The notes under the pieces were generated by a model. That model did no database searches. It was not told the origin of the DNA and saw nothing but the letters and a program-made list of their open reading frames with translations. From contig OW569386.1 of NCBI GenBank assembly GCA_937625935.1, forward strand, positions 355,932 to 419,931: DNA of 64,000 nucleotides, written 5' to 3'. This document shows, piece by piece, positions 22,687-62,268 of this stretch. Position 1 is the stretch's first letter. Each line of letters starts with the position of its first letter. The translations under genes and the position numbers were made by a program. The stretch comes from Tetramitus jugosus (lineage: Eukaryota > Protista > Heterolobosea).

Positions 22687-24639
22687 ATGGATCATCGTGA
22701 TAATTCTCTCATGTGTGGTGAGATCACTGTCAATCAAGTTCCTTGCTTTGTTTATCTTTACCACGAGTTCATTGAGATTTATCGCGTGGTCAACTCACTT
22801 ACTCTGACGACTCCTTTACAAAATCAAGGAAAAAATGCAGGTCAACCAAGAAAAGTATTTTCTTCTCCCAATGAAATGAATGACAAAGGAACAATGATGA
22901 TGGAACATTGGATGAAACTAAATGTTGCTAATGTTCAACTTTTCAATCAGAGTGAAACTGTGAGTGGTAGCAGTGATGAACCCAAAATTTTGTTCTCAGT
23001 GAAGGTGCAACCAGAAATTGCTGATATGGATGGTAGAGATGATAGTGAGACGAATGAGGTAGTTGTTGAGACATATGATTTTCGATTATCGGCTCAGAAT
23101 CGCTGCGAGGAACCACTGTGGATTCAAAGTATGAAAAAAGTGTTGGCATGGAGTCACAATATGAATCAAATGGTCATTCCCGAAGAAATTTTGATCCAAA
23201 TTATGCAATGGATGAACGCACCAGAACTATTGTTGATTATGAGTCGTTTGTCGACACATTTGAACGAATTGAGTCGGTTGGACTTGTTTTGGAGTCATTT
23301 GTATCGTCATCAATGGCCACGTTGCCTATTGAAACATGACCTGAACTTTTTTAAGGACATGTTGCATGTTCCGTGTCTATCCTGGAAAGAACTCTTTTAT
23401 TATCGATATACGAGAGAGAGACATGCAGTTCTGTTGATGACCATGTACGACCGAGTGGAACCAAGTAAAACTGAATCGACTCAAGATGAAGAGAAAATTT
23501 TACAAGATCTGAAGCGCTATCAGATACTGGCAGAGGAAGCAACATTTATTGGTAAGATATCGGATTCTATTGAACTACCACCACAATCTGGGCAAAACAC
23601 TGTTGAAATGACGTCTGAATTCCAGTTCGAAAAACTTTTCTTGGCAGTATTGGTCATTGTTGTGTTTGAAGAGCTGTTGGAGGCTAAATTCAATGTGCAT
23701 CTGTTGAGACAATATGGAATCAATTTCCGAAGACTGAGATTGCCATCTCAGCACAGTGAACAGGAGGAACAATATATACTCAAAGTTATTAATTATTATA
23801 TTGACAGTTGCGACGGCTGGCTCTCAAAAGCAGAAGAGTGTTACAAACTGACTAAAGTTAATATGCCTCTTGACAGATGGATGAGTGATATGATTGATAA
23901 CTGCTATGTGAATCTATATCCAATTGTCTCTCGACTTCCAGAGAAATATCAGCTACGAATGCTCACCATTGTCCATTCGTTTATGGATCGAATTCTAAAT
24001 CATGAGAAATTGACTACTCTCCAGCTCTTCTTACTTGGTTGTGTGCAGGAAAAGCGTGGAAAAGTCTCTCCACCGCAACAAGGACTACAACTATTTGATG
24101 AGGCCTTTTCATATTATGAACGAGCGTCGGACTCTCCAGGAACCAACGTATATGCTACTGTGGCTCTAGTTGGACTAGGTAGTACGATGGTTGAAAAATT
24201 ACAAGTGAATGTCGATCTATACAGAGAGAGTCACGAGACCGATGAGCATTTGAGAAATGAAATCAACAAACTATTTATTCAAGGTCAAGCAATACTCAAG
24301 AGACTTAAGGCGATCCTTGTCGGACGCTGTATTGCACACTTGACACTCTCTCGCCTGCATTCCATCATGTATGGTGTGAAACTCACGGAGGACGGAGTAG
24401 ATCACGAGAGAAAAGCACGCAGCTATCTCACCAAGTCGCTGTCCGCTCCTGGAACATTGCACCCCATAGTCGATGTTCGAAGTTTTGAATCGGTGAAACA
24501 CTTAGATTGGTTCCAAGAATTGTTGGTCAAGTGGAATGAAAAGATGGCAAGTCAAGCACCGAAGCCTCAACCCTCACAAATTAATTCAATGCTTGGTCAG
24601 GTAAAAGCCCAGCCAACCACAACAACGAAAATAAACTAA
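22687..24639 (+). CDS. F-box protein with possible PH-like N-terminus and helical C-terminus
   Basis: F-box IPEEILIQIMQWMNAPELLLIMSRLSTHLNELSRLDLFW; YDFRLSA...LWIQSMKKVL resembles the end of a PH domain. Confidence 0.8.
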   Translation: MDHRDNSLMCGEITVNQVPCFVYLYHEFIEIYRVVNSLTLTTPLQNQGKNAGQPRKVFSSPNEMNDKGTMMMEHWMKLNVANVQLFNQSETVSGSSDEPKILFSVKVQPEIADMDGRDDSETNEVVVETYDFRLSAQNRCEEPLWIQSMKKVLAWSHNMNQMVIPEEILIQIMQWMNAPELLLIMSRLSTHLNELSRLDLFWSHLYRHQWPRCLLKHDLNFFKDMLHVPCLSWKELFYYRYTRERHAVLLMTMYDRVEPSKTESTQDEEKILQDLKRYQILAEEATFIGKISDSIELPPQSGQNTVEMTSEFQFEKLFLAVLVIVVFEELLEAKFNVHLLRQYGINFRRLRLPSQHSEQEEQYILKVINYYIDSCDGWLSKAEECYKLTKVNMPLDRWMSDMIDNCYVNLYPIVSRLPEKYQLRMLTIVHSFMDRILNHEKLTTLQLFLLGCVQEKRGKVSPPQQGLQLFDEAFSYYERASDSPGTNVYATVALVGLGSTMVEKLQVNVDLYRESHETDEHLRNEINKLFIQGQAILKRLKAILVGRCIAHLTLSRLHSIMYGVKLTEDGVDHERKARSYLTKSLSAPGTLHPIVDVRSFESVKHLDWFQELLVKWNEKMASQAPKPQPSQINSMLGQVKAQPTTTTKIN

Positions 24640-24684: not shown

Positions 24685-27468
24685 TTATTCATGTTGAGGT
24701 CTTAGAGATGAGAAAAGATTGAAGTAAACTGCCAGGGCGCACAAAAGAACAACTAAGGCAAAGATATAGTACCATTTCTTGCTTCCTTGTGTTGTTCTTC
24801 TCTCGAACAATCCCTTCTTGATTTCCTTGTAATCAGCAGCCAATTGAATACTTTGATTTTCGAGCAACAAGTATCTCTCAAATCTAAATTGCTTCAATCC
24901 TGTGGTAGAGTCGATTGAGCCCAAATTGACAGGCTTCAAACCTGCGGTTTCACTAACACCAGAGAAGAATCTAGACATTGCACCTCCACCGACAGCCTTT
25001 GACTTCTTCAAAAATTGGTGAGATCCAGATTCGAGTTCCGCAGTTTGATCTAGCAACCTGTCCAGTTTTTCACCTCTGTTCAAAATAGAGGAAAGATTAC
25101 CATCCAACATCGATTGTACAGAACCTTGAGGAGAAGAGCGGAAATACTCAACTTCCTTGATATCACCTACGAATTCTGAAAAGTTAAAGTCTTTGGGGAA
25201 AAAGAGACTCAGGTTCATAATGTTGATGGGTGAATCGAATTTGGCGAGATTCAACTTGAAAGTTCCTCGTCCTTCCAACTTGTCAGAAGGTACAGTAAAC
25301 ACAAACTCTACGAGCATCGTATTACATGCATCCTTCTTATTCAATGGAATCAAAATCAATTTCGTGTCCTTTTGTGCTTCGGATGACGGTTTGACTGATT
25401 TTTCATCAACAGTGGTTGACCAGACTTCTGCACTCTTGTTCAATCGAATTCTCAAGTATTGCTTGGCAGTATTTCTAATGTACATCTTGATCTTGTGCAA
25501 CAACTTTCCAGATGATAGTGTAATATCGTAGACACATGTTTCAATACAAGCACACAAAACTTCTACATCGTCATGTCTTGTCACATTCAAGTGAAGTTCA
25601 TGACCCTTCTCCAAGAATCGATAGCTGTGCAAGATTGGATATGGCGACAGTCTTTGAACATGAGGAAGTTCAGTTGAGTCAATCTTTCTCAAAAACTTTC
25701 TTCCTTCTTCCTTGATTTCGACATTGGTTCTGGCGACAACGGCAATTGTTCCCGTTTCTCTGGTTACGTTTTGTGATGTCATTGATGGAGCAAAGACCTT
25801 GGCACTTGTTCCACCCATCTCCAGCTCCGTATTGATCTTAAGGTTCAATGATCTTTCGACGCCATACTTGAATTGGATCTTCAAGATTTTCTTCGAATGA
25901 GAATTCTGCTTGTTCAATTGTTCAGCATCATCCAAAGAGAGTTCATCTTCTGTCTCCAATTCCTTTTGATCATAGACACTCCAATCCTTGATATTACCGC
26001 CGCTGACGGACAAGACCTTGAATGGAGCTCCATAAGGATCAATCATAATCTCCAACTGATTCAAACTTCCATTCACAATGGAGTAATCAAACACGGCAGT
26101 AGATCGAACGAGTCCCTCACCAATGGCGTGTAAAATGTTTTGCTGAGAAGTCAGAGTCAAAGGCAATTGAACTTTCTTGTCGCTGTCCTCCTCAATCTTG
26201 ACCACATCGGGCATGAGCAATGGAATGGCCTGTGCTTTGATCTTTGGTGTCCAATTGATAGTCAAGGTACGAGTAGGTGGATAGGAACAAGTGACTTGAG
26301 TGAAGCATCGTGAGTCAAGGTCATCCTTATCGCTGTTACCTGTGGATATCTTCTTCTTTTGAACGTAGAGAGCTGGTGATACCTTGACTTGGACATCTTC
26401 ATGATGAATCTTAAAGTCCAATTCGTTCTTGACAGCTTGAGAGGCAAAGTAAAGAACAATGGATCGAGGAGAAGTCGAAAAGTCGTCACTCTGTGCCGAG
26501 TAGGATGCAAAGGTTGATGATTTGCATGTCGACTGTGATGATTGTTGAGATCGTTCAATCGACACGTCAACCACGAGTTGAATATGATACAGTCCTGGCT
26601 CGCCGCACAACATGACAATCGAGTTATTCAGAATACCGATATGGCACGCAAGATCATCCATATTATCATTCAATTGTTCACTTGAATTCTTTGTTTCTTC
26701 TGCTTCTTCTTGCTTCTGCTCTGGTTCACTCTTTTCATCTTCAGCCAACAATGGTTGTTGTTGACGTCTAATGAGGCACTTCTTGAGAGACACATTGTTA
26801 CAGATTTGTTCCAACAGTGAAACCTTTGTCCAATTCTTTCTCTTCCACTTTTTGCCCACGGAACCAAATCTCTTTCTCCACAATTCCTGTTGATATCTCA
26901 CAATGACATTCTCCAACACATCAACATAGAAATCCAATGTGAAACAAGCACCCATATGCTTCTTGATCACTTGTTCAACATTCTTGTTGCTGCTATCGCC
27001 ACTCGTATCGTTTCCAACTGAACTCAACTCTTCACCCGAAACAACAATCTTGTTGATAATGTACGGTTCTTGAGCATCGACATTGGTCATGGCAGCACTT
27101 GCTCTCATTGCAAACTGCTGCAACCACTTTTGTTGTTTATTGTGTTGCTCCAACACCTTGAGGAATGAGTCCAAGCTTACAGTAACTGTTGGTTCATTGG
27201 CAGCAGCAGCTGATGAGGCAACCACTTGTGTTGTTGGACCTGCTGATGAGGCAGCTACAGTGTAGGAAGAATGAGGTGGAGGTGGAGCTTGAGGAGCCTT
27301 TGACCTCGCATTCTTTGGCTTACCGAATAAATCACCACCAGATGGTTGAGCATCACTCCAATCACCATCATCTTCATCATAAATGCTCTCTGAGACGCAC
27401 GTCTTTCGAGTGACCCATGGGTTAGAATTGATCTGTCTGTCTAAAGACTGAAGAAATAGTTTTTTCAT
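24685..27468 (-). CDS. Large tail-anchored beta-rich protein (paralog A) with embedded R-SNARE motif
   Basis: Colinear similarity to 27753-30593; SVQSMLDGNLSSILNRGEKLDRLLDQTAELESGSHQFLKKSKAV at ~24991-25125; C-terminal TM WYYIFALVVLLCALAVYF. Start is taken as ATG 27468. Confidence 0.85.
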   Translation of the reverse strand: MKKLFLQSLDRQINSNPWVTRKTCVSESIYDEDDGDWSDAQPSGGDLFGKPKNARSKAPQAPPPPHSSYTVAASSAGPTTQVVASSAAAANEPTVTVSLDSFLKVLEQHNKQQKWLQQFAMRASAAMTNVDAQEPYIINKIVVSGEELSSVGNDTSGDSSNKNVEQVIKKHMGACFTLDFYVDVLENVIVRYQQELWRKRFGSVGKKWKRKNWTKVSLLEQICNNVSLKKCLIRRQQQPLLAEDEKSEPEQKQEEAEETKNSSEQLNDNMDDLACHIGILNNSIVMLCGEPGLYHIQLVVDVSIERSQQSSQSTCKSSTFASYSAQSDDFSTSPRSIVLYFASQAVKNELDFKIHHEDVQVKVSPALYVQKKKISTGNSDKDDLDSRCFTQVTCSYPPTRTLTINWTPKIKAQAIPLLMPDVVKIEEDSDKKVQLPLTLTSQQNILHAIGEGLVRSTAVFDYSIVNGSLNQLEIMIDPYGAPFKVLSVSGGNIKDWSVYDQKELETEDELSLDDAEQLNKQNSHSKKILKIQFKYGVERSLNLKINTELEMGGTSAKVFAPSMTSQNVTRETGTIAVVARTNVEIKEEGRKFLRKIDSTELPHVQRLSPYPILHSYRFLEKGHELHLNVTRHDDVEVLCACIETCVYDITLSSGKLLHKIKMYIRNTAKQYLRIRLNKSAEVWSTTVDEKSVKPSSEAQKDTKLILIPLNKKDACNTMLVEFVFTVPSDKLEGRGTFKLNLAKFDSPINIMNLSLFFPKDFNFSEFVGDIKEVEYFRSSPQGSVQSMLDGNLSSILNRGEKLDRLLDQTAELESGSHQFLKKSKAVGGGAMSRFFSGVSETAGLKPVNLGSIDSTTGLKQFRFERYLLLENQSIQLAADYKEIKKGLFERRTTQGSKKWYYIFALVVLLCALAVYFNLFSSLRPQHE

Positions 27469-27752
27469 TTTGTGTGCTAGGCAATCCGTGTAAGGTCGTT
27501 TCTGTGTTGTTCGTTTTGCTTTCTTGAAAGCTTGTGCCAAAAGAACTTTGTCGACGAATCGAGTTCCAAACTCAAAAATTTTTTGTTCGCCCCTGATCTC
27601 TGCATTCTGATGGGCACGAACTTCACTGGAGGAACAGAACGTAGAATCGCCCAAGTTCTTTGTGAGCGAAAGAACAAACCACAAAAACAACAAAGAACAA
27701 GTAACAAGCAACAACAAACCAGTAGAGTATTCCTTGTTTATTTGTGAAAAAA
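27469..27752. promoter_or_regulatory. Putative bidirectional promoter between the two paralogs
   Basis: 284 nt separate the divergent ATGs; an A/C-rich leader precedes each start on its own strand. Confidence 0.5.
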
Positions 27753-30593
27753 ATGGACCCACAATCATCGTCTGCCAATACAGCTACAACTGCTGCTGCT
27801 GCTGATCTCAATTGGACTGAAAAAGACTCTGTCAAAGTTCCAGTCTCACAATTCCTTCCCTTGTTGACCTCATTCGATGAATATCAAGATAAACTGTCTC
27901 ACATTGTCGATGGAGAACAATCAATGAACCCGTTGGACGACAGCAGTCAACCACCTGCGACTCACTTGGTTCAAGAGTTGAGAATTGGCGGAAAAACGAA
28001 TATGCGCCAAAATTTTGTACAGTTCGATTTGGAGTTCCGTGTGAGTGTTCTGGTCGATCACTACAATACTTGTCCATTGATTCCCATTTCCAATTCGATT
28101 ACAGTGCTGGACTCTCGCGTTCAATTGTTGAAATGGGTGGAGAATAGCAAGAACAACAAGAATACCAATAAGCAAACAAGCACATTGTCGGCAAGTAACA
28201 CTGCATCAAGCTCATCCAGTGATGATGACAATAATGAACAACAAGATATGCAAGTGTTGCCCAACTATTTTGATAGTGTGGTTGATAGCAACGCAACAAG
28301 AGAGGCATCTGATGAAAAGAATGTGCCATCTTCCTCGACAAAGTCACCTCTGGACACTCACGGAAGAATCGGGATCGTTTCTGCTTGTCACTCTCTCATC
28401 TCTCGTGGAAAGGGACTCTATTCCATTTTCTTTACCATCTCTGTTCCATTTTTGACCAAACAGAAGAGAAGTGTAGAAATGACGTTGCCACGTCAATCTG
28501 TTGCTGCTAGAACTAGAATGACTGATTTCTCTATTCAAGGCGATATGCAAGTTCAAGTTGAACCTAGTACATACCTAGAAACAAAGGTAATTACCAAGGG
28601 AGATAGCAGCACTACGTCCAACAACAGTATCAACAATGCACTCCTGAATTTTGATGACGATGAAGATGATACTTTGGATGAAACCATCGATTCACATGAA
28701 ACTGTTATCGTAGAATGTATTTTACCTTCTGTATCTCATCTCACAATCTATTGGACTAAGAATGAACCAAAGAAGGAAGAAACAGAAACACCTGATAAGA
28801 AGGTGGAGCAAGTCAAGGAAAGGAAGCCATTGACTGTGAATGTTGATCAATATGCACTCCATTCTGTGGGAGGTGGAATCGTGAGCACCAGTGTCGATTT
28901 CAATTTCCAGATTCACAATGGGTCCTATGACACCTTCTACATTTCCATGAACACACCAAAGAAGAGTGATAAGAACATTAGAGTTCTGCGCGTTGAAGGC
29001 AGAAACATTAAGAAATGGGAGATGAAGAAGTTGAGAAACAATGAGAATGCAACAGCTAGTGATGCAACATCCGAGTCTGGCATTTCAAACGCCACCTCCA
29101 ATTCATTCCTCACTGATTCTACACTATCGTCTGCGCTGGGTAACTCTCTTGAACAGAGCATTTGCAAAGTCACACTTGAGACCGGAGTGGAAGGTAACTA
29201 TCAACTAAAGTTGTTCACAGAGGTTGATATGGATGGTGAGAGTGCAAAGGTGCACATACCTACTTTTGCCTGTCTTAACGTCAATCGTGAGAAGGGTTTC
29301 ATTGGTATCGAGGCAACATCAAGCGTCGAGATTAAAGAACTCTCTTCAAGACTGACAACAAAACTCGACACTAGAGAGTTGCCATCTGAGATGACAAACA
29401 AGGCTTCTGATCAATTGATTCTAGCGTACAAGTTCCTTCAATCAAAGGGTGTTTCTCTCTTTGTCGATGTGAAGAAGCATGATGACGTGTCTGTATTGGT
29501 AGCTGTGATTGAAGAAGCTTACTATGAGGTTACTTATTCCGAGAGTGGTCACTATTTGTATCGCGTGGCATTGAAGGTGAAGAACTCGAGTCAGGATTAC
29601 ATTAAGGCTAAATTCTTGGACATTAACGATGATTCAAAGCAGATTCAGATTTCATTATGGAGTACAACTGTAGATGGAAGTGCATCGCGTCCAGCTCGAG
29701 ACAAGGAAGGATTTATCCTCATCCCATTGAAACGTTCCTCCAGCGAAACAGTATTCACTGTTGAAATGTTCTACTTGTACAACAACCACTCGGCCATTGA
29801 GGGAAAGGGAAGCCTGGAACTCTTCTTCCCTACATTCAACACACCGATCACTCGAGGTTATTACAATGTCAACCTTCCAGACGACTTCAACTATGGAGAG
29901 TTTGAGGGAGACATTAAGGAGTGTAAGAACTGGGAGAAGTACCCATCTGTACTTGGTACAATTGCATATGAAAAGCAAAAGCTTGCGTACAATAACAACA
30001 ACAATAACGCAAGAATGCCTGTACAAATGCAACAACAACAACAACAAATGCAACAGCAATACGCTATGCCGCAACAAATGCAATACGCACCTCAGCAACA
30101 GATGAACTACAATGCCATGAACATGGTCCAACCACAAATGGCTCAACAAATGAGAAACGCGCCAAGACGACCACTATACAATATCAATGCCAACTTCAAT
30201 GAAGATGACGATGAGCAATACAATGACTCCGGGTCTGACAATGACGAAGAAGATGAAGCCCTTTCAGAGTCTGACGAAGAGCTAGAAGAAGGAGGTGAAG
30301 TGAACATCTCGAACAACTTGAAATCCTCTTCCGTTGTTGGTGTACTGCCTATTGTATTGAACTCTGTGAGCAATGGAAAGAATTTCAAGTTTGAAAAGTT
30401 GCTTGTTTCTGAAACTGAGCCATCACAGCGTCTTCATGTCGAATTCAAGCAGATTGTAAAGTCATGGAGAGAGAAGAGAACTTTGTGGAGACAAGACCTG
30501 GCTGCTTGGATGAAATACAAGAGATACTTGTTTTTGGTGGTGATTCTGCTTGTGGTTGTTGCGATTGTATCTCGCTTCATCAGAAGACATTGA
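27753..30593 (+). CDS. Large tail-anchored beta-rich protein (paralog B) with Q/N-rich and acidic insertion
   Basis: 946 aa from ATG 27753; shared blocks with paralog A; C-terminal TM YLFLVVILLVVVAIV. Confidence 0.85.
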   Translation: MDPQSSSANTATTAAAADLNWTEKDSVKVPVSQFLPLLTSFDEYQDKLSHIVDGEQSMNPLDDSSQPPATHLVQELRIGGKTNMRQNFVQFDLEFRVSVLVDHYNTCPLIPISNSITVLDSRVQLLKWVENSKNNKNTNKQTSTLSASNTASSSSSDDDNNEQQDMQVLPNYFDSVVDSNATREASDEKNVPSSSTKSPLDTHGRIGIVSACHSLISRGKGLYSIFFTISVPFLTKQKRSVEMTLPRQSVAARTRMTDFSIQGDMQVQVEPSTYLETKVITKGDSSTTSNNSINNALLNFDDDEDDTLDETIDSHETVIVECILPSVSHLTIYWTKNEPKKEETETPDKKVEQVKERKPLTVNVDQYALHSVGGGIVSTSVDFNFQIHNGSYDTFYISMNTPKKSDKNIRVLRVEGRNIKKWEMKKLRNNENATASDATSESGISNATSNSFLTDSTLSSALGNSLEQSICKVTLETGVEGNYQLKLFTEVDMDGESAKVHIPTFACLNVNREKGFIGIEATSSVEIKELSSRLTTKLDTRELPSEMTNKASDQLILAYKFLQSKGVSLFVDVKKHDDVSVLVAVIEEAYYEVTYSESGHYLYRVALKVKNSSQDYIKAKFLDINDDSKQIQISLWSTTVDGSASRPARDKEGFILIPLKRSSSETVFTVEMFYLYNNHSAIEGKGSLELFFPTFNTPITRGYYNVNLPDDFNYGEFEGDIKECKNWEKYPSVLGTIAYEKQKLAYNNNNNNARMPVQMQQQQQQMQQQYAMPQQMQYAPQQQMNYNAMNMVQPQMAQQMRNAPRRPLYNINANFNEDDDEQYNDSGSDNDEEDEALSESDEELEEGGEVNISNNLKSSSVVGVLPIVLNSVSNGKNFKFEKLLVSETEPSQRLHVEFKQIVKSWREKRTLWRQDLAAWMKYKRYLFLVVILLVVVAIVSRFIRRH

Positions 30594-36720: not shown

Positions 36721-39700
36721 ATGAAGGCAAGAGCTTTCAATTTTCTCTTACTCGCTGTTTGTACACTATTACTCTTGTTTTCTCTCAGGGAAGGTTTGTT
36801 CATCTCTTCATTTGCACATGAATGCGAACTCAGCGGGATTAACTAAGAACTTTTTCTCATTCAATTAAATATAACGATAGTGGAGAGTCAATCATGTAAC
36901 GGCACAGCGAACACTGATACAACAGTTTGCTCATCTCATGGATTTTGTGTCAGCGAGGATTATTGTATCTGTCACCCTGGATATAGGGGCACATTTTGTG
37001 ATGAAGAACAATTGGGATATGCTTTCAGTGCTGGCTGGAATAGCAAGGGTCAATTAGGAGACACTTTTACAGTCAATAGGCAAACAACCATTCGAATTCC
37101 TGGATGGTTTTCATTATTAAGTTTGGCTGCTGTATCTGCCGGGGAGGGATACTCGATGGCATTAACTACTTCGGGTGACGTGTACACTTGGGGAGATAAC
37201 AGTTATGGTCAATTGGGCACTGGAGATTCAGCTAGTCGCCTCGAACCAACGCTAGTGCTGAAAGGAGCATTCATAAAGGTTATAGCTGCCTGCGCCGTGC
37301 ATTCAATCGCTTTAGCCAAAAACGGTTCTATTTACACATGGGGAACGAATAAGATTATAACCCCAATAGATACTGATAATGACCATGCTGGTATTCTCGG
37401 TCATGGCACTTTCGATGCTTACGCAGCGCTAAGACCAACCATTATTTCTGCATCTTTACCAACGAATTTTATCTCTGTGGGATGTGGAAGGTATCATTCC
37501 CTGGCACTGACGACAGCTGGAGGACTCTATGTTTGGGGATCGAATTTGGTAAATCAACTTGGAGACGGAGGAACAGGAACAAATCTAGCTATTCCCACTC
37601 CATCTGACTCTCGATACGTTGTTAGTTCTTTTGCAGCTGGTGAATATCATTCTCTGATTAGTACCATTGAAGGCAAAGTTTATTCTTGGGGCTTGGGAAC
37701 AAGCGGTCAATCTGGTGTTGTGGATTCCATGGGAAATCCTATGGCAGCACCTGCGACTCCCAGACTAGTATCGGGATCTTTGGTAGGAAAATTTGTAGTG
37801 TCAGTGACAAGTGGAAGATTTAGTTCTCTTGCGAGGTGTTTAGACGGAAGTGTTCATGTATGGGGAAAGAATACTGATTACCAACTGGGAGATGGCACAA
37901 CAACTCAAAGGAATGTTCCAGTTCAATTGACTGACATGAGTTGGGTTACTAACTTGTTCGGTGGATCGCTGACAGATACAATTTTTGCCACAGTAAATCA
38001 CACTGGATTGTACGCCTGGGGAAAAAATTCGTACGGCATCTATGGTACAGGAGTCACTGGAGTTATCTATAGAGTCCCAACTGCCATTCCTGATCTCTAT
38101 TCGGGTGCTTATGCTACTCAAGTCGCTCCAGGAAGTGACCATGCACTATTCTTAATATCTGGTATAACATGCTTTGCTATCATGGCAGGAGACGAAAATG
38201 TTTGTGCGTCACATGGCACTTGTGTGGCCATGGATCAATGTCAATGCCACACAGGTTTTACAGGATTGGATTGCTCTCTTCCTTTCTGTTTTTTGAAAAA
38301 TTCATCAGACGAGACAGTATGCAACGGTCACGGTCAGTGTCTGACCACAGATACATGCGTTTGCTATCATGGATTTTCGGGAGATGAATGCGAGGAGGCA
38401 ATTAGTGGTGTAATGTATGGTTCTGGTGATGACTCTGAAGGACAGTTAGGTGATACAAATAGTGGAGCAGGTCTCTATCAATACGCTACGATTGTTTCAA
38501 ATGGATTCTTTAAAAAATCGATTACGATGCTCGATGCAGGATACAAATCTTCACTAGCTATCTCAGGTGGAAAACTATATGGTGTAGGATGGAACTACTT
38601 GGGGAAACTGGGTAGCGGGGCGGCTACGAAGCCATCACCGATCATTATTGATAATGGCTCATTATCAGGAAAGATAGTCGTTGCTGCTTGTTCAGGATAT
38701 GACTTCTCGTTAGCACTCGCTATTGATGGTACTCTTCACGCCTTGGGAGGAAACTCGCAGGGTCAATTAGGAACAGGAGTTACCACTGCTTCCACTACAC
38801 CAATCCAAGTAGGAGGCTTACTACCATATGAACAAGTCGTTCAAGTGAGTTGTGGGTATCAACATGCCGCAGCTCTAACACTGAATGGTACAGTATTCAC
38901 TTGGGGATCCAACTCAAATGGTCAGATCGGAAATGGAAAATCCGGAGTCAATGTTCTTCTACCCTATCAGGTCTATATTTCTGGAGTTCTTTACACACGA
39001 CGTGTTTCAATGGTCGTGTGTGGGCACTCTCACACGATGGCGCTCGTGTCTGATGGTAACGTTTACACTTGGGGAGCAGGAAGTTATGGACAGTTGGGTT
39101 TTGGATCATTCCCAGCGGCTCAAGTTTTGCCTGTTAAGATAATAGATGGGATCACAAGCACCAAGATTATATCTATTAGTGCTTCCAGTTTCGCGTCCTA
39201 TGCAGTGGGATCAGATGGTATTGGATACGCCTGGGGCAAAGGCTCTCAGGGTCAAATAGGCAACGGTGAGTGGGTCAACAAGAATATTCCCACAAAAATT
39301 AGTATCACACCATCTGAGCCGATCAAATTCATTAGTAGTGGAGTCGGGCAAGTGGTAGGCGAAGATTCTCATGCCATTGCTATTACGGTGAATGGTACCG
39401 CATGGACTTGGGGACAAAATACTTACGGACAGTTGTCTGATGGCACAGCAAATCCTGCATCTATTCCTGTACGGTATAATTCAATGTATCCATATAGGCG
39501 TGTTGTATCGGTATCTGCTGGTTTTTCTCATACACTCATTACATACAATGCAACTGACTCTTGTTATGGAGTATACATGGATGAACCTCACACATGCTCA
39601 TATCATGGAGATTGTATCGGGTTGGATACGTGTAACTGTCATGCTAACTATACCGGAGATGATTGCAGTATTTTCAAATGCTTTGATCTCATTTTTAATG

Positions 39701-42700
39701 CTTCTACTGTTTGTCATTCTCGCGGCAAGTGCATCGCTCACGATACTTGTGTATGCCAAAATGGTTATACGGGAGATGAATGTGAATTTGAACGATTTGG
39801 AGTCGTGTATGCCGTGGGAAAACAAGATGCGAATTTTCAATTGGGAGATGATGATCTGGTACCTGCTTCGATTGCAGTACCAACCACTGGTTTACTAATG
39901 GATACATTTGTCACCACAGTTGAGGCAGGAAAAGATTATTCGATTGTTCTTGGCAGGAATGGTTATGTTTATACATGGGGTTCGAATTCCTTTTCCGTTA
40001 TTGGCGATGGAACATCGATTGTGAGGAGAAAGCCGTATATTGCATTTACTGGTAACGCTATCTCGATTTGTAGTGGGGGCTATCATTCACTCGTTGTTAA
40101 TTCCGATGGTAAAGCATATTCATGGGGAAGTACTCGGACTTATAATGCGTTTACTGTTTCTTGTGGAAACGGTTGGACCACTGAGGTACAATGTAATTAT
40201 GGAGTGCTGGGTAGAGGAGCAATAGGAGTAAGCATTTTACCCACACCAGATCTCGTGAGCGCACCAACAGATCAACACTTTACTCAGGCAGCGTGTGGAT
40301 TGGGACACTCGGTTCTGGTCACTGATGACGGGAAAATCTGGACTTTTGGACTCAATTATATGTATTATGGATCCCCTGGTTATAGTGGCGTCGGTGCAGG
40401 TTACATTGGCCCCTCAGCTTCTAGTGGATATGTACTAACTCCCTATAATGTTCTGGGGCGATTAAAATTTAACAAGATTATACAAGTGGCAGCTGGTGAC
40501 TTCCACACACTGGCACTCGGTTCACACGGTGAGGTGTATTCTTGGGGACGAAATACTGTTGGTCAGTTGGGCGATGGTACCTCTGTGAGTAAAGCTACTC
40601 CCATACTCGTCTCCAAAGTGATTGGCAAACTCACTGTAGTGTTTGTTGCCGCAGGAAAACAATCTTCCTATGCTATTACCTCCACTGGTGATGTTTATTC
40701 CTGGGGACAGAACACTCTCGGACAATTGGGAGATGGAACAACTGTCAATCGGTTCTTGCCCGTGTTGCTCACCTCCTTTAAAAATGTCAATATCGTGCAC
40801 ATCTCGGCTAGCAAGCTGACTAATTACGTGCTTGCTGTAGCGAAGAACGGATCTGCATATGGATGGGGAGATAACACTCAATCTCAAATTGGGGATGAGA
40901 CTACTACCAACACATTGTATCCAGTATCTGTGGTCAATCGGTCCAAGGTCAGAAAAATAGTTCATGCAGCTACTTCCGAGTTTCATTCTCTATTTCTCTA
41001 CAATGGCACTTTTTGTTTTGGGAAGCTTTCAGATGATCCGTACGTTTGTCATGGTAGAGGAAATTGCAGTGATACGGATGCATGCCAATGCAAAGAAGGG
41101 TATTTAGGATCCGAGTGTGAAATATCCATGTGCTTTGGGTTGAATTCTACGGATGATTCAGTTTGCTCTGGACATGGCTATTGTGTTGGCTACAATAGTT
41201 GTTCATGCATCAATACACATACTGGAGCACAATGCGAGTTAGAAGTGTTCGGATTGTCCTTCTCGATGGGATCGAATGCCAAGTATCAATTAGGAGATGA
41301 CTACTACGACGACCGAGCATTTCACGTGCAAACATCTTATCCTTTATCGAACGTGAATCTCGTTCGACTAGTTCATGCAGGTAACAGGGCATCCCTTGCT
41401 ATATCAAAAGTTGGCAAATTGTATACTTGGGGAAATGGCGATTATGCTCAGATTGGAGATGGTACATTTGGTATAAATCGAAATAGGCCCACCCCGATTT
41501 TGACCTCAAAAACATTTAGGAGTGCCTGCATGGGTAATACCTATGGAGTGGCAGTAGACGAAAGTGGCCAGGTGTGGGCATGGGGATATTCTATTATGTC
41601 AACAAATCCTCTGCCCTATATAGCCTGCTATGTCAATGGATATCCACAGTATTGTCCAAATACAGGCCTAACATGCGGCTGCGTTGTTAATCCAGAAAAG
41701 ACCGGTGTTCTGGGAAATCCCTCGCATTACTATTATCAAACTCCTGTACAAGTGCTAGGTTTGCCATCCATTTCGTCTGTTGCTTGTGGTGTACATCATG
41801 TTGTAGCATTGGCAGAGAATGGAACGGTTTGGAGTTGGGGAAGAAACGATAATGCACAGTTGGGATATGTTCCTTCCAAGGAGATCAGAGCCCCTATGCA
41901 AATAGGAAATGTCATCTCCCAGGGAGGTGTATTGGGCAATATTAAACTTATTTCTGTTGCTGCTGGACAATATCACTCGCTTGCTCTAGGAGAGCATGGC
42001 GAAGTTTATGTATGGGGCTATAACAATGTTGGTCAGATTGGGGATAATTCTCTAGTAACAAAGTATAACCCAAGACAAGTCATGAGAACGATTTTGGCTG
42101 AGCCCATTACAACGATTGCTGCCGGTTGGGGTTCTTCATATGCTCTTTCATCTTCTGGAAAGTTGTTTTCATGGGGGTCGAACACTGGAGGTTTGCTCGG
42201 TGTATCGTCAACAGTGCCTAATGTTAATGTCCCAGTGTCAGTTGATTCGGTTTCAGACATTACTGGAATCTCAGTCTCTCTCGACGCGAGTTATGCATTA
42301 TTGGTGACATTGAATGGCACAGCATATGGTATGGGTTCTAACAATGGATTCTTGCTGGGAGACGGTTCCACTTCTGCCAAGAATTACCCTTCACCGGTTC
42401 ACAACTCATTTGATTCCCGTAGAGTTGTTGGAGTGGCAGCAGGCTTAGATCATTCTTTGTATTTATTTAATGACACCTATTGCTTTGGTGTGTTAGCAGA
42501 TGATTCTCTCGTATGCTCTTCTCATGGTTATTGTCTCGATACAGATGATTGCATTTGTGAAGCAGGGTACACATCATTGAACTGTAGTGTTCCAGTATGT
42601 TTTAACATTACGGCGCAAGATCCAAATGTTTGTAATGCACATGGACAGTGTCACGTTCCCAATATCTGTCAATGTAATCCTGGGTACGTCGGACAAGAGT

Positions 42701-45700
42701 GTCAGTATCAAGACCAACGATTTTTGTTTTCATCAGGAGAGAACACTCACTCTCAACTCGGTGATGGTTTCTTTGTTGAGAGAAACATTCCTAAACAGTC
42801 AAGTATCTTGGCCAAAAAATTGTTCCATTTTATGAGTGCAGGTGCTGGATACTCCTTCGCAGTTAATTTTCACTCTGGTGCTTATGCATGGGGTTTGAAC
42901 GATGTTGGCCAATTGGGGGACGGATCAATCACGAATCGATACTTCCCTACACCAGTACTAAAGAATATTGATGTGGTGAGTCTCAAAACCTGCCAATATC
43001 ATTCTCTTGCACTGGATTCCTCTGGAGTCGTTTGGTCATGGGGGTCGAACTCTAATGGTCAGCTAGGAGTTGGAAATTTAGTGAATTCTCTGACTCCTGT
43101 TCAAGTACAGGGATTCACCAATATCACTATCAAGGCCATCGCTTGTGGTTTGTATCACTCAATGGCGCTCTCAACGAGCGGTGCAGTGTACACTTGGGGT
43201 AGAAGCAATGAAGGACAATTAGGGAACGGAAACACTGCCACACCGCTCACAACTCCATTCAGAATAACTCATAATTTCAACATTTTACGGATAACAAGTA
43301 TAGCTGCGGGCAATTATCATTCACTCGCTCTATCAGAGGATGGATCGATATTTGCTTGGGGTGCAAACAGCATGGGAAATCTGGGCGATGGAAAAGTAAT
43401 AGATCGAGTCGTGCCATTCAAACTTACATCCCTCTATGGTTATCCACTACAACAAAAGAGTATTCTTTCTGTTCAGGCATCCAGCGATGCATCATACGTT
43501 TTATTGTCTGACAATACAATTTATTCATGGGGCAAAAATAGTCAAGGCCAACTGGGGCTCGGTTCAGTCGTTCACCAACTGTTTCCGACGGCTGTACCTC
43601 TATCTCTTGATTACTCGATACAAACAATGTCCGCCAGTTATTCAGGTAATTTTATCGTGGTTTTGATGTCAAACGGTACTGCTTATGCATGGGGAGACAA
43701 CAGTAAAGGCCAGCTAGGAGATGGAAGTTTTACGAACAAACAATCACCAACAATTGTCCAAAATTCCATTCCGCAGAGATATATTACGGAGGTATCATCA
43801 GGATCAACACACACTCTTTATTTGTATGCGGGCACAGCATGTTTTGGTATATTATTCGATGATCCAACTGTTTGCTCATGGCATGGAAATTGTACGGCTC
43901 AGGACACATGTGAATGCGAAAAAAGTTATGGTGGAAGAGATTGTAGCGTAGCTCTGTGTTATGGAAAGAATGCCACTGATCCTGATGCATGTTCATCTCA
44001 CGGTCGTTGTATTTCGTTGGACACTTGTGTGTGTCATCAAGGATTTTCAGGAAAGAATTGTGAAGTGTCTGGATATGGTTACCTATTCGCCTCGGGTGAT
44101 GACAGATCCTCGCAACTCGGTAACAGAAACATTGGTATCCAATCGTCAATACTTCAATCCAGGTTGTTCATAGGCAAGGTCTTCAATTTTATTGTCGCTG
44201 CCTATTCATACACATTAGCAAAGGCGTTAGATGGTACAATTTATGCTTTTGGTGACAACAAATACGGACAGTTGGGTGATGGTACTTTTAACAATACACG
44301 AAGTCTTCCTGTTCAAATTTTGACTGGTGAGAATATTGTTGGTATGTGTGGAGGTTATTCACATGCTATGGCCTTGGATGATACAGGTCGTGTGTTTGCT
44401 TGGGGATCCAATATGTTTGGGCAGATTGGAAATAATGGAACCTTGGCTCACAATATCTATCTTCATCCGACAAGGGTGATGTTAGATGTTGAAATTGTCG
44501 CGATTTCATGTGGTATGCACCATTCCTTGGCTCTCAGTTGGAACGGTACAGTGTATACTTGGGGTATCAATACAAATGGAGAGCTAGGAGACAACAGTTT
44601 GATAAACAAAAACATACCCGTTCAAGTGGGTAGTTTGCTTGAAGACAAGCGAATCGTATCGATATCTTCCGGTGCCTCACACTCAATGGCTCTTGGTTCT
44701 GATGGAACTGTTTATACTTGGGGATTGAATAGTCGAGGGCAACTCGGTGATACTACCTTGACGAGTAAAATTATTCCTGTTCAAGTTTCGGGCCTTATTT
44801 ATGGAAAGCCAATCATTTCAATCTCTGCAGGTGAGCACTTTAGTTCTGCTCTTTCATTCGATTACAGAGTCTATACCTGGGGCGCTAACGATGCCGGGCA
44901 ATTGGGTGATCTGACATATGTGGACAGGAAACAACCCGTTCTTGCCTCGGGATTGCCCGATGATGCAGAAGTTGTTTCTATTAGTGCCGGTGGTCGTTAC
45001 ATGATCTCAATGACAGCCAATAGCTCCGTTTTCTCCTGGGGAAATAACATGTTTGGTCAATTGGGCGATGGTCTGTTCAATATTTCAAAAGTTTCTTCTC
45101 CTGTCCAAGCTGTTAATCAGTATGAATACACATATGTAACCTCCATCGAGGCTGGATACACTCACTCCACATACCTCCATAATGGTATAACATGTTTTGG
45201 AAAGTTTGTTGAAGATCCGACAGTGTGCTCAACGAAAGGAAATTGCACAGCTCATGACTATTGTGTGTGCGAGCCATATTACAACGCTTTGGACTGCAGT
45301 ACTTTTTACTGTTTCGGTTTTAATGCCACAGATGAGGGTGTTTGTTCCGGACATGGTTTTTGTGTTGCTGCTGACTCGTGCGTTTGTAAGCCTGGTTTCA
45401 ATGGAATTCGATGTGAAAATAAGATATCCGGATATGTGTTCGGAATTGGAGATAACAGCAATGGTCAATTAGGTGACAGTTATACGATCCCTCAAGTTGA
45501 TCCTACAGAAGTCACCGGGGCTTTGCAGGGAGTGCGCACAGTATTTATTGCAGCTGGTATAGATTTCACACTGGCTGTCACAATTAATGGAGAGATTTAT
45601 GGATGGGGTTTGAACAACTTTGGACAATTGGGCGATGGAACGACATTAACCCGATATAGACCCTCTCTTGTCAATAATCTTACGACTCAAATTACAACAG

Positions 45701-48700
45701 TGTGCGCTGGATCAAAACATTCGGCTGCTGTCGATGTTTATGGTCGTGTGTTTACTTGGGGCGCGAATAGTCGTGGCCAATTGGGCAACGGAAAAGTTTC
45801 CATTGGAGCAACAACAGTTCCTCATCTTGTGCGTGGTATCATTGAAAATCAAACAATTGTATCTGTCGTTTGTGGTGAAGAGTTTACTCTTGTGTTGAAT
45901 AATTTAGGCGAGATTTATGGCTTTGGAGATAATGCTGTTGGTCAGTTGGGCGATGGTTCGAACGCTGTTCAAACGCTTCCAGTGAGAACTGGTATTGGTA
46001 TGATTGATAATATTCCCATGGCCGCTATTTATGCTGGATATAAACATGCGTTGGCTATTGGACCTTTTGGAGTTTTGTATGCCTGGGGCGATAATTCCGC
46101 TGCACAATTGGGAGATGGAACTACATTTGGAAAGTATTCACCCATTCCGATCCTAACTGGTCCTCTAAGAGGCAAAATTATCATATCAGCAGCTGGCTCA
46201 AAGGAAAATTCCTATGTAGCTACAATTGATGGTTCCTTATTCTCATGGGGAGGGAACTTTTTTGGTGAGATAGGAGATAACTCTAGTAATATTCAGTACA
46301 AGGCCACTCCAACCAATATTCAAACAGGAACAAAGTCGATACGAGATTTGTTCGGGGGACAATCCAACGCTTTTGCACTCTCTGTGAATGGAACGGCCTA
46401 TTCTTGGGGTATCAACAGCTATGGACAGCTCGGCTCCAGAACAAAAGTGCAACAAAATTCACCTGCAACAGTCGTCAACCACTACACGGATCGTGTTATC
46501 TCTCTGATTGCCGCAGGAAATTTGCACACTACATTCTTGTACAACGCAACAGCATGTTTTGGGTTTTTGGCAGATGATGACAATGTTTGTTCGTCGAGAG
46601 GAGTTTGTGTGGACAATGATCGTTGTGAATGTTTTCAAGGATTCCAATCTTATGATTGCAGTGTTGTCGTTTGTAACGGTAGAAACAGTACTGATCCTAT
46701 GATATGTTCCGGTAACGGAATCTGCATTCCAAATGACACATGCATATGTCAGGATATGTGGACAGGTATTGATTGCGAGACGGTACCTTTCGGATATCTC
46801 TTTGCTGCGGGACGAGATCAAGATGGTCAATTAGGAGATGGACGAAGAGCTGATAGTAGACAAATGGTCAAATCGAGAACCATCAGTATTGATAGGAAAC
46901 CATTTAGATACATTTCAGGAGGCCTTTCGTTCTCCATTGGTATTCTGAATGATGAAGAGATTCGTTCATTTGGTTCAAATGACCAAGGACAGCTGGGTGA
47001 CGGAACCACTAGCACAGCCATCAATCCAGTATTGTTGCAACTTCCATCAAAACAAAGTCTAAAAACGATTGGTATTGGCAGCAACTTTGTCATTGCCGTA
47101 GACACCAACAATACGATTTATGGTTGGGGATCGAACGCAAACGGGCAACTAGCCCTTGGATTTGCGGGAGAATTTAGAAGTACACCTCATGTTATACCAG
47201 CTCTTCAAGGTTTTCATTTTGTCCATATTTCCTGTTCTATCAATCATTGTTTGGGATCTACATCCGATGGTCAAACCATCTCCTGGGGTTCTAACAATTT
47301 TGGTCAATTGGGGGACGGTACACTCAGTTCAACAAAAACCAGCTATCTACCATACAGGGTATTAAGCATCTTGGCAATCAAAAAATCTGCAATGGTATTT
47401 GCTGGCTATTATCACTCGATGGCTCTATCCATTGACGGTATTGTCTATTCATGGGGTGATAATACGCGAGGACAACTGGGAAACAATGTGACATCAACAA
47501 CACCTAGACTCTTACCATCTATCGTTCTTGGTTTGTCCAATGAGTTGGTAATCTATGTGACTGGTGGAGAGTATTTCTCTTGTGCCTTGTGCAAGAGCGG
47601 AAGAGTGTATTGCTGGGGTAATAATGCTGATGGGCAATTGGGTGATGGAACAACCAACACCAGAACTCTTCCTACGCTTGTATCCTCTCTCTATTCCGAA
47701 AATATTACACTTATTCGAGCTGGTAGATCTTTTGTATTGGCTCAAACAAGTTCTGGATTAGTGTATTCCTGGGGTTCGAATAGCAATGGCCAATTAGCAT
47801 TGGGAAGTTCAAGTAACAGAATATTAACTCCAATGATAGTCGGAAACTACTCCAATCGGTATAGTGAGTTCATTGGTACTGGTGCTTTCCATTCAATGAT
47901 TATATTCAATGGCACTACGTGCTTCAATGTGCTCCAAGATGATTCAGATGTTTGTTCGGGTAATGGTACTTGTCTGGACTGGGACACGTGTTTCTGTAAA
48001 CCAGGATTTTCAGGTGTCAACTGTGAGTTCACATCTTGCTCCGGTATCAATTCAACGAGTCCAACAGTCTGTTCCGGACATGGAGAGTGCAAATACCTCA
48101 ACACATGTATGTGTTGGGAGGGGCAATATGTGGGAAATGAGTGCCAGTATGAAGCCTGCTTCGGAAAGGGCTCAAATGACCCTCAAGTTTGTAGTGGTTT
48201 CGGAAAGTGTTTATCTCCAAACAATTGCACATGTGATCCAGGATACGTTGGTCACAATTGTCAGTACGTTGTTTGTCATGGAAGAAACACATCAGATAGC
48301 AAAGTTTGTTCTGGAAATGGTTTGTGCTACACGCCTGATAATTGTTTATGCTACAACAATCCTGCACCAGGATATACTGGAGGTAATTGTTCAGCAGCTC
48401 GATGTTACAGTCGTTTTGTGGATAGATTGACAGGAGTTGAATCCATTATTCAATATCCTGAGTCCACCTTGTCGTTGGATGTAGATCTCAGCCTTGTTTG
48501 TTCTCGTAACGGATATTGCAACACGCCGAACAAGTGCACATGTAAAACAGGTTACACGGACCAGTACTGCTCCACACCAATCTGTTTCAATATAACGGCC
48601 ACCAATGCTACTGCATGCAACTATGGAAAGAATGGAACTTGTGTTGCTTACGACAATTGTACATGTTTGACGCGATTTGATTCTGATGGGTGGTGTGTTC

Positions 48701-51700
48701 CTCTGAAATGTTTTGGAAAAAATTCGACAACAGATCCTCCAGCATGCAACAACCATCTTTCTCGTGGTAATTGTTTGAATGTAGATTTATGTGCATGTCA
48801 AAAAGGATATGGAGGTTTGGAATGCGAGCAAGCTATTTGTAATAACATTCTGGAGTACAATACATCACATGTCTGCAATGGAAGAGGAACTTGTGATCAA
48901 CCAGATATCTGTACTTGTCACTTGGGATACAATGGAACAGATTGCCAGTACGTGAATTGTTATGGTAAATTAGATGTTGAGAGTGCCGTTTGTTCTGGCA
49001 ATGGAGAGTGCATAGGACCTGATTCCTGCGAATGTCATGAAGGTTATGCGGGTAGCAAGTGTGAGTTATTCATATGTTATGATAAATTGTCTAACGTCTC
49101 GGATGTTTGTAGTGGTTTTGGTAAGTGTGTTGCACCGGACACATGCGAGTGCAAGTATGGTTATTCTGGTTTAGAGTGCTTCTATCCAAGTTGCTTCGAA
49201 GTTAATTCGACCGAAACTTCTGTATGTACTTCTCAAGGTGTGTGTTACAAGCCAGATAAATGCAATTGTACAACTGGATATGTAAGCAGAGATTGTAGTG
49301 TTCCAACATGTTTTGGCATATGGGGCACGAATAAGACTGCATGTTCGAATAATGGATTCTGTGTTCTTCCAGACGTTTGTGAGTGTGTTCCTAACAGAGT
49401 CGGTCAAGAATGTGAACTTAACGTTTGTTTCGGTAAGAATCAAACTGATGAATTCGTGTGTAGTGGTAACGGAAGATGTGTCAATCCAAATCAATGTAAA
49501 TGTTCGTCTGAATATACGGGTGCCGATTGTAGTGTGCCAATTTGTCACGGAATAGCAGCGTCTGACAACAGAGTTTGCTCTCGAAATGGAATTTGTGAGA
49601 AGCCAGATCATTGTGTTTGTTCAGAGGGAAGGATAGGACAAAGATGTGAATTGAATTTATGTTATTCATATAACGAAACTGATGTGGCAAATGTTTGCTC
49701 AGGCAATGGTAATTGCTATGCATATGATAAGTGTAATTGCTCAGATGGATGGGCGTCCAAGGATTGTTCAGTTCCCATTTGTTCAGGAGTATTAGCAACT
49801 GATAGGAGTGTATGTTCTTTCAATGGTCGTTGCGTACATCCTGATACTTGTAATTGCACAGACAAGAGAACAGGTTTAAATTGTGAGCAAAGTGTATGTT
49901 TCGGATTTAATCAGAATGACAAATCTGTTTGTAGTTCCAATGGAAAATGTGTCTCGCCTGATACTTGCAATTGTAACTCAGGAAGAACTGGAATTCAATG
50001 TGAATTCAATGTCTGTTATGGATTGAACGAGACAGATTTGAATGTATGCAGTGGAAATGGTCAGTGCATATCCCCTAATCGATGTAACTGCAAAACAGAG
50101 CATCATGGATGGGATTGCAGTAATCCTGTTTGTTTTGGTACACCATCAGTAAATGCGAGTGTGTGTTCCAGAAGTGGTCAGTGTGTGTTGCCAGATACTT
50201 GTGTTTGTAGTGCAGGTAGAACGGGTCTAAATTGTGAACTGAATATCTGTTCTGGACGAAATGAAACAGACGTGTCAGTGTGTAGTGGGCATGGTCGTTG
50301 TGTGAGTCCAAATATTTGCCATTGTACTGATGGATATACAGGAAATGATTGCCAGTACCCAGTTTGTTTTGGAAAACTGTCAACGGACTCAGGTGTGTGT
50401 TCAAAGAGTGGTGTGTGTACCTCTCCTGACAATTGTGTTTGTCATAATGGCCGAACTGGAATATCTTGTCAGTTGAACATATGTTTCCAAGTGAACGAAA
50501 CCAACGAATTTGTCTGCAACGGCAATGGTGTGTGCAATGCTCCTGATCATTGCCTTTGTAACAGCAATTTCACGGGATTTAATTGTAGTGTAAGGGTGTG
50601 TCAGACTGGTTATGCTGGCCAGAATTGTGAGATTATTATCTGTGCAGGGAAACTCTCCAATGATTCCACGGTGTGCAACGGACATGGTAGTTGCATCAGT
50701 CCTGATATGTGTCAGTGCACAGATATGTACACAGGTAGTAATTGTGAAGCCATTCAGGATCAATGTTCTGGAAACTTCTTACTCGTTAGCATTTTGGATG
50801 GCAAGGGAAATCAAAATATTTCATTGGTTGATTTCGCGTGTGGTCGGGTCGCCTACACCTTTTCTGTGCCTGTTTCCTCACAGATCATATACCATCCATC
50901 CTTAAAGAAGTATATTCTGTTCCGTAGTGGAGCATTGTATACGATTGATTCTGCTGGAAAGAGCCCGCCACTATTCTTGAGGTCTCTGTCCGCTAATGTC
51001 GAATCGAGTGCGATTTATACCAATGATGCAGATTTTATCAGCATTGTATCATACGAGGAGCACATTAAGATCTATCAAGTCAGCCTTTCTAAACCATCAG
51101 AAGACAAAACATACACGGATAGAAACTTTTTATCTATACCTACATATAGAGACAGCAGATTCATCACTCGTGATTCTCTTGGAAACTACTTTGTTTTCGG
51201 TCAAAACACGGCGGAAGAAATATGTATTGTTCAGATATATCCAAATGGTATTTTCTCTGTAATTGCTCGACTGCCAGAAATGGGAAATAGTGTTCATGCT
51301 CTCTCTTACATTGGAAGGCGTTTGTACGTCGCAACAAAATCTCGATTCTACTTCCTATTGTCAAGTGGATCATTAGCTCCCGAAATGGACTTATTGAATG
51401 GGTTTATCACAAAGAACAAGGTCGAGACTAATTTGAATATTTACTTTAATGATCCTAAGTCAGAGTATGTGATGTGGTCTCGCCGAGACAGATCTCTCTC
51501 GAACTCATATATGATGTATCCTCCGTCTCTTAAAGGAAAATCCTTCAAGATAATCGGTGACTTTAAACCCCAGTTAACAAGTATTGATCCACCATACTTA
51601 TCCACAAGCAAAAACCAACCCGTATCTCTTAACGGTCAATTCCTCCAAATAGGAGATTTCTCAACTGTCACTCTGTACAGTACAAGTTCCAAATTCCAAG

Positions 51701-61740: not shown

Positions 61741-62246
61741 GTTGTGTTGTTCAATTGGTTTGTGCATGCTTCATCAACGAAAAAGTTTTTCGTCAAGATC
61801 CAACAAACAAAATTACTCTGTGCTTAATGATCGATGATGAATGACACAGAGAAGAAAATAGAGTGGTTCAAGCAAATGAACCCACAGAAGTTCAATGAAG
61901 CATACCGTACACCCGAGAGAACAGCAGCGATAATAGGGCTCATCCTTGGACCGCATGCGACTAAGAAGAATGCTGTCCAGTATATTCACACTTCAAAAGA
62001 TATTCAAATACAACTGGGTGTTAATTCACGTGAACTTACTGCAGCAAGTAACGTATACAAACGTACATTTCTGTGTATGAACGATGAATAGAATTCGAAT
62101 ACACCAGAGCCACCACGCAAAATAACTAGAGTATCATCAGAATCAGACTTCACAACTACTACAGTGGCAGCATTGAATACTCCACATACACACGCCTCGC
62201 AAGTGTGCGATAACTCCCAGATACATACAGAGACTATTGTTAATAC

Positions 62247-62268
62247 TGGGTTGGGTTTGGGTTTGGGG
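62247..62268 (+). repeat. Interstitial telomere-like tract
   Basis: TGGG TTGGG TTTGGG TTTGGGG, same orientation as the terminal array, ~1 kb inside it. Confidence 0.7.

Follow-up and report, generated by a model that had tools for sequence, protein, structure and literature searches.

A head-to-head gene pair of Tetramitus jugosus encodes tail-anchored proteins of a large undescribed family, one of which carries an R-SNARE motif in an internal loop

The gene pair and its transcripts

The window analyzed here is a 64,000-nt stretch of a contig from the heterolobosean soil amoeba Tetramitus jugosus (GenBank assembly GCA_937625935.1, contig OW569386.1, positions 355,932 to 419,931). It contains two long genes, here called A and B, that are transcribed away from each other. 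The features relevant to this analysis are as follows, with coordinates counted from the first nucleotide of the window.

24685..27468, minus strand: gene A, 927 aa, intronless
27469..27752: divergent spacer between A and B, 284 nt
27753..30593, plus strand: gene B, 946 aa, intronless, paralog of A
27094..27186, minus strand: A aa 95-125, a strand-like short motif and a helix before domain 1
26245..27069, minus strand: A domain 1, aa 134-408, predicted beta-sandwich of the aminopeptidase-N N-terminal type (Z 10.8)
25582..26157, minus strand: A domain 2, aa 438-629, predicted beta-sandwich
24826..25563, minus strand: A domain 3, aa 636-881, predicted beta-sandwich of the M1 aminopeptidase N-terminal type
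24991..25122, minus strand: R-SNARE (synaptobrevin) motif, A aa 783-826, layers -4 to +8
25075-25077, minus strand: zero-layer Arg798 of A
24709..24771, minus strand: A C-terminal transmembrane (TM) helix, aa 900-920, preceded by a basic stretch
29940..30335, plus strand: B loop at the site of the A SNARE motif, Q/N/M-rich, then an acidic tract
30525..30581, plus strand: B C-terminal TM helix, aa 925-943, preceded by a basic stretch

An initial annotation, made from the nucleotide sequence alone, had described two intronless genes separated by 284 nt. This description is supported by RNA contigs from four runs, which cover both genes without a single splice joint. All eight of the A/B peptide pairs that it quoted are present in the translations. 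It had also proposed that the two proteins align from end to end, which is true of most of their length. In a BLASTP comparison the two are 30% identical across 583 aligned columns (E 3e-58), with a second matching block past the loop, and a single family profile extends in both proteins from domain 1 as far as the C-terminal region. Two parts fail to align, namely the N-terminal ~90 aa of A and the domain 3 loop. Searches of the 26.35-Mb genome with a single query, and also with a 120-row profile, recovered A and B as the only family members, and therefore their adjacency is not a product of chance.

The reading frame of A remains open upstream across the spacer and would encode 1027 aa if counted from position 27768. 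Transcript ends rule out a start at that position. Because the longest transcript begins at 27517, the ATG at 27468 is taken as the start of A. This transcript is a 2,972-nt record from a near-identical strain (97%) that spans A from 27517 onward. Positions 27518-27693 within the spacer have no RNA contig coverage and are likely to be the shared promoter region. Both genes are present in the same RNA runs, in which contig depth is uninformative on co-regulation, and the records that carry them are mostly soil metatranscriptomes. A comparison of three A/B spacers revealed no conserved promoter motif beyond chance. The closest named relatives of the two proteins come from Naegleria and Willaertia.

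Several other features of the window deserve mention. A 650-aa F-box protein is encoded at 22687-24639 on the plus strand, convergent with A and with the two stop codons 45 nt apart, and A transcripts extend beyond 24667, toward or into this gene. One 5,503-aa open reading frame occupies 36880-53391 (plus strand). The last segment, 62001-64000, has a very strong GC skew (0.52) and a negative AT skew, of the kind seen at telomeric or simple repeats.

Predicted fold

The AlphaFold2 model of A (mean pLDDT 76, pTM 0.55) predicts three beta-sandwich domains followed by the TM helix. Its best Foldseek match is ribophorin I (E 6e-11). Domains 2 and 3 together align with the two luminal domains of ribophorin I over 323 residues (Z 16.1), and the rmsd of 21 Å over both domains means that their relative orientation differs. 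Over 145 residues, domain 3 alone resembles the N-terminal beta-sandwich of M1-type aminopeptidases (Z 13.2, rmsd 3.2 Å). A bacterial member of the family yields these same two structural matches. To judge from its homology to A, B probably adopts a fold of the same three-sandwich type. The element at aa 95-125 of A is also found in B and in bacterial members, and we consider it a candidate dimer contact.

The model of A contains no helical zinc-peptidase catalytic domain of the M1 or M61 kind, and its matches to these peptidases cover only their N-terminal sandwich. The coat-like complex suggested by the initial annotation finds no counterpart here, since the model has neither a beta-propeller nor an alpha-solenoid, and the C-terminal domains of AP mu subunits match it only weakly (Z about 6). 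A search for WD40 repeats in A also gave no match. At the level of sequence, the 120-row family profile retrieved no solved structure, and identity to ribophorin I is 8-12%. The cores of A, B, and the bacterial members are covered by no Pfam or NCBIfam model. Feature matches in the ESM Atlas all scored below 0.9; some had no name, and the rest owed theirs to fused accessory domains. The proteins had been assigned to an uncharacterized family, and these profile searches bear that out.

An R-SNARE motif in the domain 3 loop of A

The initial annotation also predicted a role in membrane trafficking. A link of this kind is supported by a feature that was not part of its claim about the pair: a synaptobrevin-type R-SNARE motif in a loop of domain 3 of A. 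The motif scores 31.3 bits against PF00957 (Synaptobrevin), above the curated cut-off of 26.4, and aligns with PDB chains of VAMP8 and Nyv1. Among the 15 matches in this genome it scores much like the tomosyn-like gene L023 (32.2 vs 33.7 bits), which the genome encodes along with 13 conventional R-SNAREs. When an HMM was built from these other 14 proteins, A scored 34.0 bits, and none of 2,000 shuffled versions of the loop exceeded 8.5 bits. Its best-scoring relatives are the VAMP7-like proteins of the genome.

A retains Arg798 and layers -4 to +8, matching the R-SNAREs of its own genome. It does not have the full 16 layers (-7 to +8), as Glu, Arg, and Gln stand in place of layers -7 to -5, at the end of a strand and in the linker. 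The loop that holds the motif (aa 783-844) is disordered in the AlphaFold2 model (pLDDT <50), as would be expected of an unassembled SNARE motif. Layer +8 lies at residue 826 and the TM helix begins at 900, which leaves 74 residues and two strands of domain 3 between them. An assembly chimera was considered as the origin of the motif and is ruled out, because transcripts span the motif and three other lineages carry it.

Among about 170 family proteins, the HMM built from the genome's R-SNAREs matched A, P0001 (its copy from the same species), P0003, and P0028, and no others. A near-canonical motif (46.7 bits) occupies this loop in a fourth carrier lineage, L032, and 17 of 32 residues of that copy are identical to a canonical VAMP7-like protein of the T. 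jugosus genome. L032 and L033 are spliced genes that were searched and placed exon by exon, with the exons left unjoined. The zero-layer Arg and layers -3 to +1 are kept in all four carrier lineages. The motif is absent from P0002, the closest ortholog of A, whose core is 77% identical. Naegleria and Willaertia also lack it, and thus it is dispensable.

Trees built without the loop place all four carriers in the A clade, where they do not form a single clade of their own (AU p 0.0004). The simplest account is one gain followed by at least two losses (one in P0002 and one in Naegleria plus Willaertia), with several gains as the alternative. The motif is truncated differently in different lineages, and in P0028 its pattern is lost after about layer +3; these differences would also fit slow decay. 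No SNARE motif was found in bacterial members. Loops similar to that of B, which are Q/M-rich and acidic, occur in its orthologs and in many other eukaryotic members.

Some further observations concern R-SNARE-like sequences elsewhere. In P0030 (L030), a short stretch of the loop after the domain 3 strand resembles the middle of the R-SNARE motif, with an Arg at the corresponding position, and gives no HMM score; it is possibly an older R-SNARE remnant. In P0139, a distant Cys-tailed member, aa 228-250 of the same loop are weakly like the C-terminal half of an R-SNARE (2.3 bits, not significant). T. jugosus itself also encodes three divergent longin R-SNAREs, C37, C10, and C43 (L018, L019, and L020). 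The zero layer is Asn in L018 and Thr in L020, and L019 and L020 have Cys-rich tails in place of a TM helix.

A large family in protists and bacteria

A matches 1,704 clusters at 50% identity, and the family is found in both protists and bacteria. Its eukaryotic range includes Amoebozoa, Discoba, Metamonada, and centrohelids; the named members belong to dictyostelids, Paramoeba, Anaeramoeba, Pharyngomonas, Chasmostoma, and Pterocystis, and most others are unnamed. The resemblance to proteins of myxobacteria, acidobacteria, and planctomycetes that the initial annotation pointed to is genuine, since Myxococcota, Acidobacteriota, and Planctomycetota are among the nearest structural clusters. Bacterial members also come from Elusimicrobiota and from Deltaproteobacteria MAGs. 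We found no literature describing the family, its fold, or its locus tags in a search of largely open-access papers. The family is therefore large and, in the literature searched, undescribed. In this respect the earlier notion of an uncharacterized family stands, but the family is not confined to the A/B pair and is widespread in protists.

The eukaryotic members form one clade relative to the bacterial sequences sampled (SH-aLRT 100, in a tree without an outside root). Within it, A and B fall into separate clades, each fully supported. The duplication that produced A and B is thus eukaryotic. Direct descent of A and B from the first and second modules of bacterial proteins was considered and is ruled out by the single eukaryotic clade.

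Two groups of members have unusual architectures. In P0009 (Paramoeba aestuarina), P0010, and P0035, about 18 N-terminal residues read like the N-terminal tail of histone H3. As three separate records share this feature, it is perhaps a genuine fusion and not an artifact of assembly. In bacterial members of 2,100-2,700 aa, such as P0070 and P0074, two TM helices seem to lie in the variable domain 3 loop of the first module, and domain 2 is duplicated.

Membrane anchoring and gene pairing

Hydropathy analysis places one TM helix near the C-terminus of both A and B, after basic residues, and neither protein has a signal peptide or another N-terminal hydrophobic stretch, as had been noted initially. 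This is the arrangement of tail-anchored proteins. Across 83 eukaryotic members, the C-terminal end is a TM helix in 33, a CaaX box in 23, and a CC or CxC ending in nine, and just two have an N-terminal hydrophobic stretch. Bacterial members carry signal peptides and often have extra TM helices. Prenylation is a cytosolic process. The interchange of TM and prenyl tails within the family thus supports a cytosolic body, as the initial annotation had proposed. We infer with strong confidence that the bodies of A and B face the cytosol, opposite to those of bacterial members.

Linkage of the two genes is preserved in some relatives and not in others. In Willaertia magna the A and B orthologs are head-to-head and 289 nt apart, and a metagenome contig has the same arrangement with a spacing of 158 nt. 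No flanking gene is common to the window and these two loci, and one Willaertia neighbor gene maps to a different contig in T. jugosus, so the pair alone was kept. No partner lies beside the A orthologs of N. fowleri and N. gruberi or the B ortholog of N. gruberi. The same is true of the three family members in run ERR14790941 and of P0003, and linkage is absent in Dictyostelium purpureum and D. cf. discoideum. The EukProt dictyostelid entries P0076 and P0125 belong to different dictyostelid clades and bear consecutive numbers (gene7738 and gene7739), and so these genes may be adjacent; P0076 is 1667 aa long and may be a fused model.

In bacteria, seven of 12 loci contain two full tandem paralogs and one more contains a fragmentary pair. 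Some of these pairs are co-directional operons in which stop and start codons touch. There are also two-module fusions, with at least nine chains of ~1,500 aa and more than 20 that are longer. Single-gene loci exist as well (L036), and the bacterial loci show no conserved neighbors that hint at function. The first and second modules are not two clades, and hence pairs arose more than once. Such recurrent pairing is circumstantial evidence for a homodimer that has repeatedly become a heterodimer.

A proposed role and its rivals

Our working model, offered with somewhat less than even confidence, is that A and B form a heterodimeric scaffold at a membrane, in which A serves as a decoy or regulatory R-SNARE that is itself membrane-anchored. 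Their complex would be tail-anchored to an endomembrane on its cytosolic side, and each subunit would be a non-catalytic rod of three beta-sandwich domains. The family would work as a dimer of modules that was duplicated and retained as pairs several times, in bacteria and in Heterolobosea, and the exposed variable loop of the membrane-proximal domain would be its lineage-specific business end. In A, the VAMP7-like motif of this loop would zip with Q-SNAREs. By an estimate from residue counts, the flanking linkers (about 25 aa) would be just long enough to bridge a helix of 44 residues (about 66 Å). A probably does not drive fusion, because it is without layers -7 to -5, its motif is pinned at both ends, and that motif lies 74 residues from the TM helix. 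Rather, it would hold Q-SNAREs as a local decoy or placeholder, in the manner of tomosyn but based in the membrane, and its action is presumably inhibitory. Among the parts of this model, SNARE binding by A is probable, and an A-B dimer is favored to a similar degree. A broader history is more speculative. An exported two-module scaffold of bacteria might have turned cytosolic early in eukaryotes and spread among free-living protists, to become in Heterolobosea a heterodimer of which one subunit captured a VAMP-like helix as a loop that gates fusion at a specific membrane. The same reading would make A a third, unrelated class of regulatory R-SNARE, a suggestion that is equally tentative.

Other explanations can be offered for the arrangement and orientation of these proteins. 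A and B could act separately, for example as homo-oligomers, with their layout a remnant of an inverted duplication that is kept only by a shared promoter. This seems doubtful, if far from fanciful. Linkage has been lost in several lineages, dictyostelid paralogs are mostly unlinked, and genomes this compact commonly contain divergent genes with little space between them; however, Willaertia shares just the pair while its neighbors differ, and the bacterial operons with touching codons and the two-module fusions also weigh against separate action. Very improbable is a luminal or extracellular body like that of bacterial members and ribophorin I, with a role as a folding or glycosylation accessory. 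Ribophorin I is indeed the best fold match and bacterial members do have signal peptides. Nevertheless, 81 of the 83 eukaryotic members lack a signal peptide, CaaX and CC ends stand in for the TM helix in 32, a SNARE motif makes sense only in the cytosol, and the low identity to ribophorin I is accompanied by the failure of the profile to match any solved structure.

The main rival to the regulatory R-SNARE reading is that the complex has a structural or other role unrelated to SNAREs and that the motif of A is a decaying passenger, a VAMP7-like fragment that landed once in a tolerant loop. Loop length and content are hypervariable across the family, most members never had the motif, two or more A-clade branches are missing it, and the truncations vary among lineages. 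Even so, the motif is recognizable in four lineages with cores that are 44-64% identical where compared and loop flanks that cannot be aligned, and the L032 copy is still close to a canonical VAMP7-like protein at 17 of 32 residues. We regard the passenger explanation as possible but rather unlikely. An improbable alternative is that A acts positively, either as a tether or priming SNARE in a trans complex with Q-SNAREs of another membrane or as a working v-SNARE. A has a TM anchor where tomosyn has none, its layers -4 to +8 are intact, and its anchor and motif share the membrane-proximal end. In VAMPs, however, zippering is coupled to the bilayer, whereas in A the residues and strands that separate layer +8 from the TM helix would uncouple the two. 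The N-terminal layers that start zippering are also missing from A, and the genome already has its conventional R-SNAREs and a tomosyn-like gene.

If the regulatory reading of A is true, this protein may hold back or direct membrane fusion by a means not previously described, and it would represent a new architecture, in which a tail-anchored protein presents a synaptobrevin-derived motif on a loop of one of its folded domains. Natural orthologs with and without the motif supply a built-in control. More generally, the analysis draws attention to a large undescribed family, whose Dictyostelium members are open to genetics, and to an apparent switch in orientation from exported proteins in bacteria to cytosolic proteins in eukaryotes.

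Comparison with known systems

The bacterial members of the family are homologous to A and B over the whole module, are predicted to share their fold, and also occur in pairs. They differ in being exported, in often having extra TM helices or fused modules, in their co-directional operons, and in lacking a SNARE motif. By fold, A also resembles ribophorin I (RPN1/Ost1), the N-terminal domain of M1 aminopeptidases, TAF2, and VIT domains, and like ribophorin I it has tandem sandwiches ahead of a TM helix. Identity to these proteins is just 8-14% without a profile match, and the model has no zinc-peptidase domain. Ribophorin I has two domains where A has three, and the eukaryotic members lie on the opposite side of the membrane. 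A has neither the signal peptide nor the sequence signature of ribophorin I, and no Pfam or PDB profile of that protein matches it.

Few SNARE mimics have been described, the best known in eukaryotes being tomosyn, amisyn, and the CD225 proteins (PMC11730294). Like the CD225 proteins IFITM3 and PRRT2, A would be a membrane-bound SNARE mimic. The motif of IFITM1-3 is without N-terminal layers and still binds Q-SNAREs (PMC11730294). CD225 proteins are small and their motif is weakly similar, whereas A has a clear synaptobrevin homolog within a 900-aa unrelated fold. The motif of A has its closest relatives among VAMP7-like proteins, and like VAMP7 and other longin R-SNAREs A has a tail anchor. 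It differs from VAMP7 in having no longin domain, an N-terminally truncated motif, and 74 residues with two beta-strands between the motif and the TM helix, where in a fusogenic v-SNARE the anchor follows at once.

Tomosyn, which is non-fusogenic, joins t-SNAREs in a four-helix complex, and it has WD40 propellers and a C-terminal motif with no membrane anchor (PMC8377282). A is like tomosyn (STXBP5) and amisyn (STXBP6) in being a large scaffold with an R-SNARE motif that is not beside a TM helix. Unlike tomosyn, it is built of beta-sandwich domains, carries its motif in an internal loop, and is tail-anchored. It has neither of the two hallmarks of the Tomosyn/Lgl/Sro7 group, the WD40 propeller and the unanchored C-terminal motif, and the tomosyn-like gene of this genome (L023) is a separate gene. 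Neither A nor B is a tomosyn, a VAMP, a coat protein, or a ribophorin, and A may work like a regulatory R-SNARE.
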